From: Epithemia pelagica
Taxonomy: Eukaryota; Protista; Bacillariophyta
NCBI GenBank assembly: GCA_946965045.2
Contig: OX337237.1
Coordinates: 3,286,001 to 3,350,000 of the forward strand
Reading direction: 5' to 3'
DNA length: 64,000 nt
Part shown: positions 46,197-57,982 of the stretch, piece by piece
Layout of the letters: every line of letters starts with the position of its first letter
Numbering within the stretch: the first letter of the stretch is position 1
Notes under the pieces: generated by a model
Databases searched by the model: none
Told to the model about the DNA's origin: nothing
The model's input: only the letters and a program-made list of their open reading frames with translations
Translations under genes and position numbers: made by a program

Positions 46197-46957
46197 AATG
46201 ATTTTTGTTTGGTGGACGTTGGACGTAATAAAGCGAACACCACGTAGGGAAAATGGGAAAAGAACACATCTGGACTGTTCCTAATCAATACTCAATACTG
46301 TTCCTTTCTTCCTGCCGAATCACCATTTTTCGAGAATATTCCACGTTTTCATGTGTCACCAAGACAAAAGGATGATGAATAAAATGATTATCGTCGATCG
46401 TCTATCGTCTCTCTCTTTTATGTTTAACTGTTTTACTTCCGGGTAATGAGCTCCCATATCAGAAGGTTTATTGTAATGTACCATTTGAGTCCTTATTGCA
46501 TCTGTTTTCTGTACAACCCTGCACTGCCAGTTGCCAGCAGCAGTATGTCCGATTTCTGAGCTCAATTGAGTGAATAACAGCTAAACACTGCTTGTTAGTT
46601 GTTAGGTGCACGATTGCGTCGTGTGTCCTGCTGTCAGATTCCACATCCGCCTTGGTATTTCTTTCCCTAGGAAATCTAGAAAGCATCTACGATTTGTGTA
46701 ATTTTGTGCGGCCACGAGTTCAGCACGATCGACAGGACCATAACTCATTGTCACAACAGGATGCTGATGATCGTTTGGTGATGCCATAAACTCACACAAA
46801 ATCTCGTTGCGCACAAATGGAGTCGAAACCGCAGCGATTCAAAGGCCAAACGTTAGAGTAAACTTGAAAAAGAAAGACAGTGGATAAACCTAAAGCATCG
46901 TGCCATGGAATCTGTGAGAAGGCAGGAAAGCAGAACAACTGCCCTTGTATAAACACT

Positions 46958-49092
46958 ATGATGGAGCCTTCACGAGGAGGAGACAGGGGTGATCCATCCA
47001 ATCAAGAGGCGCAGGGCTGGTGCTTATATCGAGACTATGCTAAAGCGCCAGCTCCATCGAGCTCAGTCAACCGTCCAAGGTCTCGTGGTGGAGTAAGCAC
47101 GCACTTCCCTGCCGTGTTACATGCTATGTTAACGCTCGCTCAAGTGGACGGATACAGCGATATTTGCTCCTGGATTGAGCCTCATGGCCGAGCATTTGCG
47201 GTGCACGATCGAGATCGATTTGTCAGAGAAGTCTTGCCAAGGTACTTCCGGCAAACTCATTATGCAAGCTTTCAACGACAATTGAATCTTTATGGTTTTC
47301 AAAGATTCAGCATTGTTGGTAACTTGGACACTGCCTTCGGTAGTGAGATGCCTTCCAAACAGAGTGACGATAAAATAAATGAAGGCCCCGCTCCTGTTGC
47401 AGCGCTGTCCTCCTCTTTTGGTTCCAACAAGAGCACTGTGGTCGCAGGACCTCCTCCACCAGTGTATTACCATGCCATGTTTTTACGCACTCGACCCGAC
47501 TTGTGTTCAGATATCCAACGATCAACGGAGCGAGAACTTCGAATCAAGAAACGAACCCACATTGTGGCGACCCCCGACCCCAACTTCTCCTTGTTTGAAG
47601 ATTTGCCGGCTATTTCCGATTGTGATGTTGAAATGGCACGCAAGCGGGTGTCTTCTTTTGCCCCAACGGTCCCACCGAGTGCATCATCTGATGCCACCAC
47701 TGCAGGACAAGGACCGATAACTTCGACCGGCAATACTGCACACCTACCCGAAGATCCGTCCGATAATGCTTCCTTCGACAGCTTCAATGCTGGTATGCCA
47801 ACAGAGTTGTCTTCGAGGAAGCGAAAGTATCAAGAGAAATCAAAAATGGAGGACCAGAGTGCACCTTTTCTTTCTCATTTGTCAAAACCGCCTGCTACTG
47901 CAGCCACCATGTTCCCTGAGCAGCGATCCATCATGACCTCATCTGCGACCAGCTTCCCTTTCTCCGAAAAAGCTTCCTCTCTGGATGACTTGTCGTGGCT
48001 GGAACCTCGACCAATCGCTCCCTCTCTCTTTCCTTTACCTGCTGGCAGAGCCTTCAGTGCAGCTGCTGCTCCAGTTCAAGGTCCAAGAGCAGGCGGACAA
48101 CAACAACCATTTCTTTCCTCTATTACAAACACACATAGAGCAAGAGACTCTCACACGAATACACCTGGGGATTACTCGTTTCCATCACAGATGAATCTTC
48201 CACAAAGCACCGCGACTCAACACGAACCAGTCTCCTTGGATGAGCTCTTGTCTGTATTGCCTGCCGCGACGAATCGAACAAGAACACCAATGCCCAGCGA
48301 GACCTCCAGTGTACATGCACAATACGAGGCCGAAAGGCAAGCTTTTCCAGGACACACGAATAGTTCGTGGGAACGAGGAGGCTTCCCCGTTGCCAATCGT
48401 GACACTTTGTATGGGGCCGCTGCCGCGGCAGCATCGTCTCAACGCGCCCAAACAAGGGTAAGTCTGCTCTTCTCTCTCTGTTTGCACCTTTCTGCGCTAG
48501 ATTTTCACTCATGCATTTTTCATTGCAGGACACGAGCACTGCGGGGAACCCCAGTTTCTACAACCCTCTAGATGCGCAGCATCGCCTAAACCCTTTGACT
48601 CTCCAACAAGCTTCCAGCTTTTCGTTTCCGGGTAGCCAAACGACCGAAACGCGACTGACGGCTAATCCGGCCCTACCACCTACGCGCCGTCAAGAAGTCT
48701 CTCCGAGACTATTGCCCTATGGTCTTGGAAATATGCCGTTGTCACCACAATTGCCCCCGGTACCACCGCCCTCGGATGCCGCATTCTACTCTTCGACATG
48801 GAATACATCTCCAAGGGAGGGATCGTACCCAGCGTCTCAAAATCCAAGCGATATGATGAGCGAGCAAAAGGTCAGCACAGCAGGACCATCGCTTGATATG
48901 TTATCGCTCCATGCACATCCGGAACAACAATTACATCATGCACTTTCTGGGCCACAACAGTCCAGTCGGATTATGAGCGATCATACAGGACGGGTTGGAA
49001 TGGCAGGTACTACAGAAAAGCCATCTCCTCAAAACGAAAAGAAGAGGAGGCCAAGGGCGATTGTGAGAAGACCGACTTCTAGTCCGGCTTGA
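46958..49092 (+). CDS. Heat shock factor (HSF-type DNA-binding domain) protein 1; exons 46958-48457, 48529-49092
   Basis: THFPAVLHAML..ICSW..HGRAFAVHDRDRFVREVLPRYFRQTHYASFQRQLNLYGF..YYHAMFLR; intron GTAAGT..CAG. Confidence 0.9.
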
Positions 49093-49822: not shown

Positions 49823-51670
49823 TTAGCATGTTGGCGAAGATGGCAAATCTTTGAACGAAGAGAACTGTAATGCATTCTGTTGACGTTCATCGCTTTGGCT
49901 GGCTTGCATTGAAAAGTTGGGAGAGCTTTCATTCATCAATGTCATGAGGTTTCGAGACGCTTGATAGAAAGCTAGGGGATCGTTGGGTCGGGTAGTCGGA
50001 GCAGTCATGAAAGGATTGAGTCCCGAGGCCTGGGTCTGGAAACACGATCCAAGAGCGATTCGTAAGCATTCTCGCCATGTCGCAGGGAGTCGCCCTGAGT
50101 CGCACGTTGATTTGGTCTTGATTCTTACCTGCATGCGCGCACGCGCAGGAGAAACACCCGAGGGAGTGATTGGACGGAAATCCGAAGATTGCGCGCTGGG
50201 CCGAACAGGAGGAAGAGCATGGGATTGTTCCAAGGCTTGAAGGATCGATGTCGATGAGGGGAAACGACCCGAATCAAGTTAGGATTGCATGCCGATAGTC
50301 TCACCTGTATTTGGTGGATCGTTTGGGCGAGTATTGGGTTCCGTCATTCTGTCGTGATGAGAAGAAATGCCAGGAGATGGTCGGCTTGAAAAGACGGAAC
50401 GATCTCCTCCTTGTGAGATGAAGGCATCTGGGAAGGCTGCCTCAGGGAAGTGTTTGGATGATTCACGAAGCGAGGTATGAAGTGGGAGGAGTCCGGGTGC
50501 TATAGGACGAGGCTCCATCCAGGAGGGATCGAGCATAGCATCTTCTTGCTCTTCTTTTCCCTTTTTCTTCGATAATGGTTCTGTTCCAGAGGCCATGAAG
50601 GTACCATCGGTCAATGCCATACTTGCGAACCTGTTTTCTCCTCCTCGATGGAAATCAAGCAACCCTTCTTCGCTCTTTGCCTTCATTCGAGCAAGTGTTC
50701 TAGCGGTTTCGGCCGGAGCGGGAGCGGGAGGTGTTTCCATTTTTGCTGGCGCAGAACCAGTGCGCCTTTTCTCCTTCCAAATGGCCGACTCTAACTCACC
50801 GCTGACACCATGCGTGCTTGACCAGTAAAGGTTTTCTTCATCACGCCTTGGCATGCCTCGGAAAGGACTTTTTAAGCCACCAAGTTCTTCCGGAACATCA
50901 ACCGAAAACTTTCTCTTGCGCTCACGCGTTGTATCAAATTCGGTAGCAAGGTCTTGGCGGTACATTGAAGGAGTCGAATGAAAGGGAAGTGGCTCTGTCC
51001 ACAATGGGTCATCGTTGGGGTAACCTTTCTTGATACCACGGTTTGCTGAGTCATCTTCTTCATCGTTGGACGAGCCTTTGCTGCTGCCAGGTGGTGTTTC
51101 CATTTTCGCGGGGGCAGAGACTCTTCTTTGAGGAATCGTCACACCACTTGCTTGTTTGAGGTCTTCAGGTCTTGATTCAGGCATGGGTTTGAATTTCCTA
51201 AAGTCAGGGTCGGGGTTTGACGCAACTTTGGCTCGTCTGCGATCTCGAATTTCTTTTTCGGTGGCTCGTTGTATAGCTCGGCATAAGTCTTGGCGTGTTC
51301 GTAAGAACATGGCGTGGTAATATGCACCTGGACTGTTGTTCGGATTCTGTAGGGATGCACGATCAAAACCGTAGAGGTTCAATTGTCTCTGAAAGCTTGC
51401 GAAATGTGTTTGCCGGAAATAAAGAGGCAAGACTTCCCTTACAAATCGTTCTCGGTCATGAACAGAGAAGGCTCTCCCATGAGATTCCCACGAACATACG
51501 TTGCTGTAGCCATCCACCTCTGCCTTGGTCAGCATTGCATGCAATAAAACAGGAAAATGTGTGGTGATTCCTCCTCTATACTTTGGTTCGTCTGCATCAG
51601 GCGGTGCCGGTGTATCGGCATGATCCAAGAAAGAGGGCGAACGACTCTCATCGCCCTCAATCTTCTTCAT
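49823..51670 (-). CDS. HSF-type transcription factor 2; exons 51670-50305, 50235-49823
   Basis: THFPVLLHAML..VCSWESHGRAFSVHDRERFVREVLPLYFRQTHFASFQRQLNLYGF..YYHAMFLR; intron 50236-50304 is in phase. Confidence 0.9.
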
Positions 51671-53730
51671 CGTGATAGTTGCTTTTCAGAAGCTTGTTCT
51701 TTTGAATATAAGAGTTTGCAAAACATTTGCGAAAGGCACTTTGGGAGTAATCGGAGACTTTTCTCAAGTCCCAAGCACCGTCTAACACTCGGGACAGGAA
51801 TCCGCAAATTACGGTAGTGGATTATGTCTGATACTACCCAGCGTCATTCCACGACTCTTTGCCTCGTTCGGTCGTGTGTCATGAGAGAAAGATCAGTTTA
51901 TCTGGAGGAAAAGAAAGTGCCAAACACACACAGGCCACGCCAACGGCCAGTTTGGACAAATTAATAAGGTATCAACTTTTGAGAGCGAATCTAGGAAGAC
52001 GACACTATTCCGGGGGTCTTTTTATTACAACCTTCTACCGCGAGAAGGATCCCTCTACATCGAAAACAGGCTGCATGATGTTTGATGTCTGAGGAACCAT
52101 CAGTTACAAAGTATTCTGTATTTTTCCACTATAGCCCTGACAAAGTTCGCATACACGAAATACAACCAGCTCATCTCATCACACCGATGCAATCCGTCGA
52201 TGTGGATGGGGTCGCAGAACACAGAATGTTTATGTTGTGTGGTCGGTGGTCGGTGGTCTGTTCCCTTGTCTGTCAGTGTCAGGTGTCAGGGCTGCAAGCT
52301 GTAACGCTGGATTTGACGGGATGACAGAATGATCTATTTTTAATTTTCTGACGGAATCTTTACTGGCTTTTTAGCGCTAGTGCCTGCGAACTACTCCTAG
52401 CTAGACGATATTCATGCGGTGAGGCAATTCATATTTGCCTGGACATGGGACAAAAGATTGTTTAAGGTACTCCTACGATCAATCCCTTTTGTCTTCTGCA
52501 ATGAAATAATAAGCTACCCTAGCTCCACTTACCTGAGTATTCTAGGAGTAGGAGCAATGGACATGGTACTCGTATCATCGTCATTCGGTTTTGGTCAGAT
52601 GTCACATTAGTAAATTGACCAAGAATCGCTGATGACCATTTTTTTGTTGGGAGTGAAATGTGACTGGTGACTGAGAAACAAAAGAAATAAACATAGTGTC
52701 ATTGGTCATAGTGTTGCTTAACTCATAATAGAAAGGCATCCCAATTCCCAATCCCAGACATCCCAGATCCCAGCCGACTCTGCTTAAAGCTTAATTTTTA
52801 AGGGACCCAATAAATAATCAGGTCCACAACCAAGGTACCTTGGACGCAATCAACAACCATAAAGAGAGATGATATAAAAGTTAGGAGTAATCGTTTTAGG
52901 TGTACTTGGCTTCTCTACTCTCTCCGTCGTACAGAGCTACCTGTAAGACACCATAATGAACATTCAACTAAAGTCTGAACAAAATGAAACTACATTCTTT
53001 TTATGATCCTATAAAACTTTCAAGGAAAGCGGAATCTCAATCATGCGACAGGGTATCTCTAGACAAGTCTCACTCCCAAAGATTGAGTCAAGAGCTTTTC
53101 ATTTGCTTTCAAATTTTTGTCTTCTTTCAGTTTCCTGAAAATTATAGTTGTTCGTAGATGACACTAAGCTTCATCAAGGACAGATAGTTAGCTACCTTAG
53201 CTCCCCTGTTCCGTCGAAACACAGCTTGAGCATTGAGCAGTATTATAAACACACACGGGACTCGAACAAATTCTCGAAATGAACGCTCCGTCAAGAAGAA
53301 GTATAAAAAATAATAATGTCTTTCTCACACCAAACACTAGACACTAACCGTTTTCCACAGATTTCTCGTGTCTGCGCTGTGATTTTTTTCTGCATGTTTT
53401 TGTGCTTTACACTTTACACCCATACGACGTCGATCAGTTCCTAGCACGAACAAGTGAAGTAATTTTATGTGTTAACTGAATTGACTTTGACTGCTTTCGC
53501 CAGGGAGTGGGCTTTTCTTTGTCTTGTGTCTTGTGTCTTGGCCGTCTTCTTAAATGTGATGGTTAATGGTTAGTATATTACTATTTCGTGTGGGACATTT
53601 TGGACAATAGATCGATGATAGACGACGACCGAACTCTGTCGTCCCCCACGGGAGCGACCCTAAGGCGATCTATGAGCTCTTGTGTAGACCACCGGGTTCG
53701 AGTCCCCACCGTGCCTTGTTGGGTTGGGAG

Positions 53731-54835
53731 CAGGGTATTGAAGGCATACCGGTTGACTTTTGACTTCATGACATTAAGTCATAACTTTTGACTTTTTTTA
53801 CAAAATCAAGTCAAAGTCACGTCCCTTTGGTACGACTTTTCTGAACGAATTCAAATCAACCTATATTTTGTACGATTTTTTCTCTGAAGTCAAAGTCAAA
53901 TCCAAGTCACTCTATCTAGGAACGAACTTTTTTCATACCAAAATCATTGACTTTTGGGGGGTTTTCTCGCTCAAAATCAAATCCAAAGTCACGACATTTT
54001 TTGAATGACTTATTATCCAAAGTCAAGTCACCGTGCCTCATTTACTGACTTCTTTACAGAGAAGTCAAGTCACGGGCGTCTTTCCCCACTGACTTAAAGT
54101 CAGTCCACGCAATATCAGTACTAACTTTCCCTATACTGCTGGTGAGATAATGACTTGGTTCAAGCTAGGTCGAAACTTGGAGAAACATGGTGTGATGGGA
54201 TATGGGATATGGGATAGTGAGATGTGTGATGGTCGATGGTCGATGGTCGATGCTGGAGAAGGTCAATGAAACTTGTAGTGTATGAATAGAAGAGAGATGG
54301 GAGATGAGAGAGTGAGTTGAGGGTTGAGGTTTGAGGTGCATGACGGTGATACTGCCAACTTCTGCGGTATGTATCATGTATCATGTAGACAAAGTCATGA
54401 CTTAAGTCATACAAAAAGTCTGACTTTTGGCTTGACTTAAGTCAAACGAAGGTAGAAAAAGTCAGGAGAAAAGTTAAGTCATGGGGGTATCTTGACTTTG
54501 CATCGTGGACGAAGTCAAGTCAATAAGGTGCTTGACTTGACTTTTGTTGAATAGTCAAGTCATGAGATGAGAATGTATGACTAAGTCAGATGAAGTTAAG
54601 TCATGAGTGGGGCGCGCGTGACAAGAAAAGTCAAAGTTAAGTCGTTGTGAAATTATCAATGGCTTAAAGTCAGAAGTGAAGTTGGGGTAATGATTTGTAT
54701 GATTATTAGTTAGACATTGAAATCAAGGGTACTGTTATGATGACTTTGGAATGGAAGTTAAGTTCGTATGAAAAAAAATCTGACTTTAAGTTAGAAGTCA
54801 AAGTCACAACTGGATTTCATAACTTCAATACCCTG
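53731..54835. mobile_element. Non-autonomous hAT-like DNA transposon (1105 bp)
   Basis: Perfect 13-bp TIR CAGGGTATTGAAG / CTTCAATACCCTG. 8-bp TSD GTTGGGAG at 53723-53730 and 54836-54843. Dense subterminal AAGTCA/TGACTT repeats; no transposase ORF. Confidence 0.93.
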
Positions 54836-55350
54836 GTTGGGAGTTGGGAGGGCCATTTCCAGGGCCCGGAAAAACGGTCATCTGTGTGTGGCCCTCGTCA
54901 CCGGAGGGCTGCTCCCCCGCGTCGAAATGGCGCCAGGGCAGTCGGTCGACCTTACCCACTCTGACGGGAGGGCGCGGCAGCTGAAATAGATTGGATCCTT
55001 TTTGTTTAGAGCGAGAATAAGAAGAACTACCTCAGTGTTGACCTCGATTTGACATGCCCTCTCTTGCTGGGGATCATCCATGTCCAACTTTCCTGTTTCT
55101 TTTCTAAAAAAATGAAATAAAAGGTTATCTTCTAGGTTTAACTCGTACGCTTCAAGTAGCACAAGTAACCTAAAAAGTCGACGAAATGGCGCCGAGTAAG
55201 TTCCTACGTTTTGAATAGTTCGTTCCCGTGACGGGAACGAGTATGTGGTTCTTCCATAAGTCAACGTTGCGATCCCGCCAATGGAATGGCTGTTGAGTGC
55301 GTTCGATCAATCGGAAATCTTTCTCTCATAATTGCAACGGTTGTTCAGTT

Positions 55351-57982
55351 TCAGTTTTTGGGGAACCAAACAAGATACTTGATATCCTGTAGTTGACTTG
55401 GATCGTATATAGATGAGAAAGGCTCTACCTCAAACTGGTTTGAGATCACTCGAAACTGGGAAGACCCAAAAACTGGGAAGCGCAAAGACAAGAACACCTG
55501 GTGTTGCTCGAGTTGGGGAACTGGAGAAAGCATGGCTTTGCTCGACCGCTGAACTTGATCCGCAACCATTTGCATCCGTGAAATATCCTCTTCAGTGGCA
55601 CAAAAATCTTGCAATGGCTTGTCAATGATATCGGCGTCCTTGATTCCCCACATGTTTTCCAATATGGGATGGACATGAATGACCATAAAAGGAGATTTCG
55701 AAAGAGTTATCACAATGGGCCTCTCTGTACCCCCAAGTCCCTGTTTTTGTTGCACTGGTGGATCCGGTGATCTTCTTGGAAAAGGAAATTGTAAGTTCAA
55801 TTCCTGTTCAGGAGTCAACTTCATTCCCGTAGCTGATCCTTGATGTTTGGTCTCCTCTTTACCTTCATCGTAAAGATCGGACTTGAATGGAGTAGGACCA
55901 GCACCGTCGTGCCCCCAGTTATCAAACACTGTTGCCCCTGCGAATTTGGCATGACAAGAACGAAGCAATTCATGGTAAATGAGTTCTTGCCCTGTATTCA
56001 CATTGATCCTCTCAGCTTGTGCAATCACTTACCTTCTCTTCTTTGAATACTAGGGCTTGCAGTCAGTTTCTGTTGCTCTGGAATGTGGATGTGTCCACGG
56101 GTTTCATTGGGAGCCGTATTAAAATAAGATGGAAACGTTTCATTCACCGGAATCTCCTGTCGCGAAGAAAAGGACGGCAACGAAGGCGAAAATGTGCTAA
56201 CACTACGAGAACCTGGCCCCGCAGCGACTTGTCCTCTCAAAACAGAAGGAAATTCTTGTTGTTGTGAGAATAGCGACTCCAAAAGGGAGGCTTCTGGTTG
56301 CTGATCCTGTGAATATACTTGATGGTGGGAACGTTTCCGGCCTGACAATGCCGTCAAGTCTTGGTCTTGGTAGGGGGGTGCTTGTGTGAACGTTCCATGC
56401 AATGTGGACTCTGCGTTTGCTACTTCGGAGGGTTGCTACGAAAGAAGACGATCCAATCAAGAGCATGAGATATGAACATGACAAAAGTACATTGATGGTG
56501 ACGTTTGCTTACCAGTCTGCCTCCCGTAAGACCACGGTTGTGGAGCCCAAAACTCAAGTTGTCGTGTCCGTGCATACTGCTAGGACTTGAACTCATTTGC
56601 CCTCTCTGGAGTGGGGAAAACGAAGTGTGATAAGCTTGATTCTGAACAGATGGGACTGACTGCCATGGAGTTGGTGGCTGCTGCTGTTGTTGCGGTTGCG
56701 GTTGATAAATGTGGCGCACAGAGGGCATGCCGAACTGGGACGAATCACTTGTGTAACTTGATTGATGTGCCCAATCACCACCTCTTTGCGGATGAGAGAG
56801 AGCTGCTCGGGATGCTGTAACATCATGATTGCTGTACGGTCCAGTGGCAGTGAATAATGATTCTGAGGGTGCAATGGGACGAGGCTCCATATTGTCCCAC
56901 CATGATAGATCGGCCCCACGCTGTTCGGATCTCGAGAGCAATTCGGTTCCAGTTTCATGTCTATCGCGACTCAAAGGTAGCTGCTGTTGAGGTCGCTGAG
57001 GTGCGACTGATACGGGTGGTAAGGTTGAAATGGGCAACGGCGCATAGATATCTTCGGTCGGTTGTGTCGGTTCGGGGGGCTTGGTCTGTTTGCTCGTGCG
57101 CAATCTTCTACGGGGACGAATCCATGGACGGGGACGACGAGGCGGCTGGTGAGCTGACGCTTGCTTCTGCTGTTCTTCACCTGAAGGTGCGAGTCCCTCC
57201 GACGTATCCCCCGAGTTCTCTGACTGCAATGCAGTCCTAGCCCGGGTCATGAGGTCTTGAGTTTCGCCTGGTGCGAATGCCGAAGGAAAAAATTGCTGAG
57301 ACTTGACCAACTTGCGTGCGATTTCCACATGTTCTTCTGCCGAACGTGGAAGCTCAGGGTACTGGGAGAAGTCTGGATCGGGCAAGGTAAGAACTCGACC
57401 TCGTTTCTTTTCCCGAATTTCCTTCTCGGTGGCTCGTTGAATATCGAGACAAAGATCGTGACGTGTCCGCAAAAACATGGGGTGATAATAGACAGCCGCA
57501 ACGGCAGAGGCACCCACTGCCGATCGACTGGCGTCGCCTGATGATGTTGGATCCTTGTCGACACTTGATCTCCGGATGCTACTGCTGCTCAGTCGTTGAA
57601 AGCCGTAGAGATTCAGCTGTCGTTGAAAACTTGCAAAGTGAGACTGCCGAAAGAACCTTGGTAACACTTTCTTGACAAATTTTTCTCGACTGTGTACGGC
57701 AAATGCGCGGCCATGGGGTTCCCAGGAGCAAATAGAATCATATTCATCGACTTCTGCAAGGGTTAACATGGCATGAAGAACCTCGGGAAAATGAGTGCTA
57801 ATGCCTCCTCGATATTTTGGCTGTGATGAATCTGATGCCGGAGCAGGTGCATTCGAATAATCTCGATAGGACACCAATGCCAACGCTTCTTCGTCATCGG
57901 CCGGAACTTTTTGTTTTGAGGTCTCTGACATGCCGAACTTTAACGAAAGGACGCTTTCTGGAAATGGAGTTGGGTAAGGCAT
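55351..57982 (-). CDS. HSF-type transcription factor 3 with a predicted C-terminal PAS-like domain; exons 57982(or 57931)-56513, 56435-56033, 55937-55351
   Basis: HSF DBD THFPEVLHAML..FRQSHFASFQRQLNLYGF..YYHPMFLR. Introns 56436-56512 and 55938-56032 both have GTAAG donors and phase-compatible AG acceptors. The last exon contains RPIVITLSKSPFMVIHVHPILENMWGIKDADIIDKPL. Confidence 0.78.

Follow-up and report, generated by a model that had tools for sequence, protein, structure and literature searches.

A diatom-type HSF gene that probably carries a strongly diverged PAS-superfamily domain in its last exon

Heat shock factor (HSF) domains bind to nGAAn-type repeats in oligomeric form. PAS domains serve as sensors and as surfaces for dimerisation or for contact with partners. 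The two have been described in one protein in the haptophytes Emiliania huxleyi and Tisochrysis lutea, where the PAS domain was proposed to sense a stimulus or to stabilise the oligomer (Thiriet-Rupert et al., 2016, PMC4827209), and LOV-HSF combinations occur among the LOV proteins of marine metatranscriptomes (cited in PMC13737086). In diatoms, for which an expansion of the HSFs is typical (PMC4827209), the PAS-bearing factors that have been discussed are bHLH-PAS proteins (e.g. bHLH1a/RITMO1) and bZIP-PAS proteins (PMC6738920; bioRxiv 10.1101/271445). Here we describe a gene from a 64,000-nucleotide stretch of the Epithemia pelagica genome assembly GCA_946965045.2 (contig OX337237.1, positions 3,286,001 to 3,350,000, forward strand), the whole of which is referred to below as the window. 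The gene occupies window positions 55351-57982 on the minus strand, and we consider it probable that it is a single three-exon HSF gene of the diatom type with a fast-evolving linker and a last exon encoding a PAS-superfamily domain that is strongly diverged and lacks the LOV flavin-cysteine motif. Coordinates without a prefix are window positions and those of the form C6:1400440 lie elsewhere in, or refer to contigs of, the same genome.

The region appears in open reading frame (ORF) lists as three separate frames, which most likely represent one minus-strand gene of about 819 codons (Table 1). The bases were read directly at both junctions. At the second the donor hexamer GTAAGT occupies 56032-56027, immediately after the G at 56033 that forms the last base of exon 2, and the acceptor CAG (55940-55938) is preceded by a pyrimidine-rich stretch and leaves 55937 as the first base of exon 3. 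The junction codon is made up of G (56033) and GG (55937-55936) and specifies Gly, after which GCA ACA GTG... continues as ATVFDNW in the frame of the 225-aa ORF. This is the splice geometry described in the initial annotation of the stretch, which had also placed the stop codon of the second ORF inside the donor; the stop does lie at the donor, two codons beyond the end of exon 2, but TGA 56027-56025 overlaps only the last base of the hexamer and is not strictly inside it. An alternative acceptor named there (AG 55993-55992) is in frame, as was claimed, but leaves an intron of only 41 nt and we judged it unlikely. Skipping of exon 2 would break the frame. In-frame GT...AG pairs are not rare and by themselves are weak evidence, and the weight of the argument lies in the comparison with relatives.

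When 1.84 billion representative proteins were searched exhaustively with HMMER, only four protein clusters had the last-exon domain, and in 4/4 occurrences it either forms the C-terminal end of an HSF of the same clade or follows directly 3' of one. In P0004, from a third organism (4.5-kb JGI contig, of a sample series that is probably the transcriptome of a culture), one uninterrupted ORF of 596 aa has SWMEPRPIAP as well as HSF_DNA-bind (residues 50-145, E 1.9e-22) and, at residues 477-595, the domain; it is only here that the HSF and PAS-like domains can be read directly as a single ORF in one polypeptide, whereas in the window their union is deduced from splice geometry. In another assembly or species (L009/L010) the 209-aa P0003 begins 90 nt after an HSF ORF, to which a 128-nt phase-0 intron links it; P0003 is a single ORF holding both linker and domain, intron 2 being absent, and its linker DLELSDSHELPPP is as in exon 2 of the paralogue on C6. 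This paralogue (C6:1400440-1400754, 44% identity, E 8.6e-11) is the only one found in the 60.5-Mb genome of the window itself, where a profile search added only a weak match in a bZIP-PAS gene. It too lies directly 3' of an HSF DNA-binding ORF, and its layout consists of the HSF DNA-binding-domain ORF, an 84-nt phase-0 intron (GTAAGA...CAG), a linker exon, a putative phase-1 donor (GAAG followed by GTCAGA), a putative AACAG acceptor 78 nt further on and then the domain. Between the two C6 haplotypes intron 1 differs by eight single-nucleotide polymorphisms (SNPs) and a 1-nt deletion and the exons by 1.8-3.8% with no indels, and the frames and splice sites are intact in both. It is the fit of the splice sites, taken together with relatives in which HSF and domain share one ORF or are arranged over exons in the same way, that makes a single gene the most likely interpretation of the three ORFs. 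Two other searches gave no further relatives: with exon 3 and the P0004 tail as queries a word-index search of proteins recovered the queries alone, and none turned up when metagenome contigs were scanned with the family alignment.

The initial annotation had noted that the last ORF resembles the start of a PAS domain, quoting the peptide RPIVITLSKSPFMVIHVHP...KYLVW, which is present in the exon-3 translation. We conclude from sequence comparisons that the last-exon domain is very probably a diverged member of the PAS superfamily. The only significant matches outside the family in the HMMER search (E 3e-7 to 1e-3) were to sensor kinases of bacteria, each with five or six PAS domains, and were located inside those domains. 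When the four-member family alignment (A2) was compared by hhalign with 19 PAS domains from these bacterial proteins the probability was 96.5% (E 7.9e-10), with reversed or column-shuffled query controls giving 0.3% or less. As these targets had been preselected by the family's own profile, a second comparison was made with independent targets, 12 PAS/LOV domains from the window's own genome picked only by the Pfam PAS model; this gave 90.8% (E 1.2e-6) over 91 columns extending into the strands, with controls of 0.8% or less. The C6 paralogue scores 18.2 bits with Pfam PAS (E 0.0026), below the cut-off of 22.6, and an ESM protein language-model feature search returned PAS clusters for two family members. 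Among solved structures (PDB) the best profile matches were the PAS-B domains of ARNT2/ARNT and the PAS domain of hERG (E 0.02-0.8); a PDB search with a two-sequence profile had given one chance match, a ribosomal protein (E 0.42), which was discarded. Across the family 16 positions are invariant, including the Cys in DKPLQxFC. Both low-confidence AlphaFold2 models show two strands, four short helices and three strands, which is the PAS order. In the Foldseek search PAS-B chains of ARNT/HIF come up repeatedly among the weak matches and were not counted as evidence.

The canonical GxNCRFLQ (NCRF) motif is absent from all exon translations, and because of this the domain is not regarded as a LOV flavin photoreceptor, in agreement with what had been proposed. 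Four true LOV domains with GRNCRFLQG (aureochrome-like) are found elsewhere in the genome (C16:1393314-1393616, C9:2265590-2265904, C4:3470752-3471039 and C2:4075417-4075677), and these fit a stramenopile or diatom origin of the genome.

Constraint on the last exon can be judged from haplotypes. Compared with haplotig L004 the window shows 16 SNPs in exon 1, of which 5 are synonymous and 11 are not, and one in exon 2, with no differences in the 587 nt of exon 3 or in either intron; there is no indel within 55351-57982 and there are five in the upstream flank. On these small numbers the last exon is the best preserved stretch of the gene and not a decaying remnant, and the lack of haplotype differences in exon 3 together with the 16 invariant family residues argues against decay. 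The C6 copy has 13 base differences between haplotypes in its exon 3 (L002 1379-1845 vs L019), with five amino-acid changes in the last 91 residues and three more upstream. The window copy has no differences, and constraint seems to differ between the two paralogues. Haplotig L004 also lacks 1113 nt just downstream of the gene (window about 53730-54843), an insertion/deletion polymorphism.

A number of observations weigh against a single HSF gene with a PAS-like tail, and they bear on two different alternatives. The spliced product of the window gene is not present in the protein collections, relatives were found at the level of paralogues with no orthologue of the gene itself among them, the intron-2 borders of the C6 paralogue were taken as the nearest in-frame pair, and the functions beyond DNA binding are ones that we infer. 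In addition ATG 55824, which is in frame and ahead of the domain, could in principle start a stand-alone protein of 157 aa. There could then be two genes, with the HSF ending at TGA 56025 and the last ORF transcribed separately to give a small PAS-like protein from this ATG, as the separate listing of the ORFs by gene callers would have it; the genome does have small C-terminal PAS ORFs that are unlinked to HSF, such as L032 2853-3242. We nevertheless hold two genes to be improbable, as both domains lie within one ORF in P0004, linker and domain are joined in P0003, the first Met of the C6 exon-3 frame falls within the domain's opening strand, the domain is confined to positions directly 3' of HSF genes belonging to a single clade, and the splice sites are in phase at both junctions in both paralogues.

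The other points concern the identity of the tail. Pfam gives nothing above its cut-off, and the window domain has no Pfam PAS match even with the threshold relaxed to E 10; alignment to PAS is weak over the C-terminal half of the domain, and against the PAS domains of the kinases hhalign is confident over a core of just 58 columns; AlphaFold2 failed to fold the domain, with a predicted local distance difference test score (pLDDT) of 46.4 from two sequences and 50.3 from four, and Foldseek, given the second model, returned no match that reached E 0.001, with template-modelling (TM) scores of 0.3 or less to PAS structures. HHpred or structure prediction had been suggested initially as the means of recognising a PAS fold; the homology was seen by profile-profile comparison, but not by structure prediction. 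The gene fusion might therefore be real and the tail be either a decaying remnant or a small alpha/beta domain with no relation to PAS, the likeness of its N-terminal 40-60 residues to a PAS cap being due to chance or convergence. To this we give little credence, since the two profile-profile tests had clean controls and the second reached the strands, every significant match outside the family is PAS, the length and the predicted beta-beta/four-helix/three-strand order fit PAS, and the conservation of exon 3 speaks against decay. A further proposal, compatible with one gene ending in a PAS-like domain and a refinement of it, is a splicing switch between a PAS-bearing isoform and a PAS-less HSF. 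Retention of intron 2 would yield the tail-less isoform because a stop lies two codons past the donor (six extra codons in C6), and the tail-less neighbouring genes show that such a form is viable; a nearby intronic stop is, however, expected by chance, and P0003, which has no intron 2, cannot use such a switch, and we rate it as unlikely.

Table 1. Features of the proposed HSF gene with a PAS-like tail (window positions)
Feature	Positions	Strand	Details
ORF 1	56420..57982	-	520 aa, HSF
ORF 2	56025..56402	-	125 aa
ORF 3	55351..56028	-	225 aa
Exon 1 (proposed)	56513..57982	-	490 codons from ATG 57982; HSF-type N-terminal part; phase-0 end; donor GTAAGC at 56512
Intron 1 (proposed)	56436..56512	-	77 nt, GTAAGC...TAG, phase 0; TAG acceptor 56438-56436
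Exon 2 (proposed)	56033..56435	-	Low-complexity Ser/Pro/Gln-rich linker; phase-0 start, phase-1 end
Intron 2 (proposed)	55938..56032	-	95 nt, GTAAGT...CAG, phase 1
Exon 3 (proposed)	55351..55937	-	Stop included; short linker, then PAS-like domain
HSF-type winged-helix DNA-binding domain	57434..57790	-	Residues 65-183 of exon 1; PF00447 HSF_DNA-bind
Conserved motif DLSWWDNMEPRPIAP (SW..EPRPIAP)	56867..56911	-	Common to six HSFs of the clade, with or without PAS-like tail
Diverged PAS-like domain (probable)	55363..55725	-	Residues 71-191 of exon-3 translation; family alignment A2, profile-profile comparison

The assignment of the N-terminal part is straightforward. The PF00447 match covers profile positions 1-99 of 100 (E 6e-22, 78.5 bits vs a cut-off of 22), and this is the only Pfam family in the three ORFs; exon 2 is without any. 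The exons were searched singly. By eye (no coiled-coil tool was used) the 77 residues after the HSF domain, where HR-A/B would lie, contain no long heptad repeat. In a family scan of the genome, which gave 70 HSF-domain matches, this domain appears at C10:3343434-3343790. Far from the DNA-binding domain, within the fast-evolving linker, the motif D(L/P/M)SW(x0-3)(M/L)EPRPIAP is kept in 6/6 HSFs of the clade (the window gene, 50279..51670 on the minus strand, 46880..48571 on the plus strand, L002, L009 and P0004), and it may be a docking or activation motif.

Three genes of this HSF clade form a tandem cluster in the window, all within 11 kb (46880-49092, plus strand; 50279-51670 and 55351-57982, both minus strand). 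The initial annotation stated that the two neighbouring paralogues lack the last-exon domain, and this was borne out, at the sensitivity of the own-genome searches, which found it only in the window gene and at C6:1400407-1400781. In a tree of the six relevant HSFs and eight outgroup domains (moderate support, the outgroups being only about 100 residues each) the six formed a clade (99/99) in which the three window genes grouped together (80/90), with the gene described here as sister to the tail-less neighbour at 46880 (91/99). The simplest reading of this tree is that an ancestral HSF had the tail and that, after tandem duplication on the window contig, the last exon was lost or was left unduplicated in the two neighbours. 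The tail would then be ancestral to this small HSF clade, and the two tandem neighbours appear to have lost it.

A third possible pairing of HSF and PAS was considered on C1, where 4.6 kb separate a Pfam PAS match (C1:4980397) from an HSF domain (C1:4985262); the interval contains an opposite-strand ORF of 416 aa, and the two look like separate genes. L032 2853-3242 (C1:4980352-4980741, plus strand) is a small ORF ending in a PAS domain with a similar stretch, GQPLQDFV, and is probably another small PAS protein. On C10 an open frame of 1151 aa (C10:1504807-1506684, plus strand) contains five or more consecutive PAS matches and may encode a multi-PAS sensor protein.

If the gene is a single HSF gene with a PAS-like tail, its working can be outlined as follows. 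The N-terminal winged-helix domain would bind DNA, an activity already established for PF00447, and would be joined to the tail by the long linker, which is of low complexity and evolves fast. The likeliest role for the tail would be that of a module for protein-protein contact or dimerisation, like a PAS-B domain of the ARNT type, and the tail would in that case set the oligomeric state or the choice of partner; it may also respond to a signal. We put forward the contact or dimerisation role tentatively, and the prediction of a homodimer of the domain (0.10 vs a mark of 0.32) counts neither for nor against binding. Sensing of a ligand or of redox state by the tail, as suggested initially, seems doubtful to us, and a role as flavin photoreceptor is unlikely. 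It is also conceivable, if improbable on the present evidence, that the tail replaces the classical HSF coiled-coil in oligomerisation and makes DNA binding conditional on a signal (e.g. redox at the Cys of DKPLQxFC) or on pairing with clock-related bHLH-PAS or bZIP-PAS proteins; were this true, part of the expanded diatom HSF family would be tied into PAS-based signalling.

The idea of an HSF-PAS fusion put forward in the initial annotation is supported by the relatives but is less new than was implied, since HSF joined to PAS or to LOV has already been published for haptophytes and metatranscriptomes (PMC4827209, PMC13737086), and the advance is incremental. We found no paper on a diatom-type HSF with a C-terminal PAS domain that Pfam does not see. 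Diatoms have dozens of HSF-type factors whose inputs are almost unknown, and a clade with PAS-like tails offers a candidate interaction or sensing domain and a testable handle on HSF regulation. The locus also illustrates how ORF-based or prokaryote-style gene calls hide an architecture of HSF plus PAS, and it adds a PAS family that is too diverged for current Pfam models.

Among the known systems the PAS-B domains of the animal proteins ARNT and ARNT2 gave the best sequence matches of solved structure, including the stretch ...L.FC...DQ..L. PAS-B of ARNT/ARNT2 provides a surface for dimerisation and for coactivators. The matches reach E-values of only 0.02-0.6, these proteins have an unrelated DNA-binding domain and two PAS domains where the window gene has one, and membership of that family is not claimed. 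The LOV-HSF proteins likewise join a PAS-superfamily domain to an HSF DNA-binding domain in marine protists, but theirs is a true LOV and the order is written LOV-HSF, whereas the window domain is C-terminal and lacks both GxNCRFLQ and the NY..DG..FWN-type strands of the LOV domains in its own genome. The haptophyte proteins resemble the window gene in having an HSF DNA-binding domain and a PAS domain in a protein of a marine alga, and the same functional hypotheses apply; they differ in that their PAS domain is seen by standard domain models and the one described here is not, and in that they were described as a haptophyte feature whereas the window genome is diatom-like. No protein of the haptophyte type was among the profile matches from the 1.84 billion proteins, so a common origin with haptophyte HSF-PAS is not established and an independent fusion is possible. 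The bZIP-PAS and bHLH-PAS factors of diatoms and the aureochromes (bZIP-LOV) share with the window gene the combination of a DNA-binding domain and a single PAS-type domain in a stramenopile factor. In the same genome the closest look-alike of the HSF tail is found where the PAS domain begins in a bZIP-PAS factor (L007 46-2064, C8:1412666-1414684, plus strand; PAS_9 E 5.4e-9, weak bZIP_1), whose alignment to the PAS-like domain spans columns 1-38 (DKPMVMTLATPPYTIVQVNKLWEEMTGY vs ERPIVITLSKSPFMVIHVHPILENMWGI). What sets the window gene apart from these diatom factors is its HSF DNA-binding domain, a far more diverged PAS-like domain and a family of four clusters.

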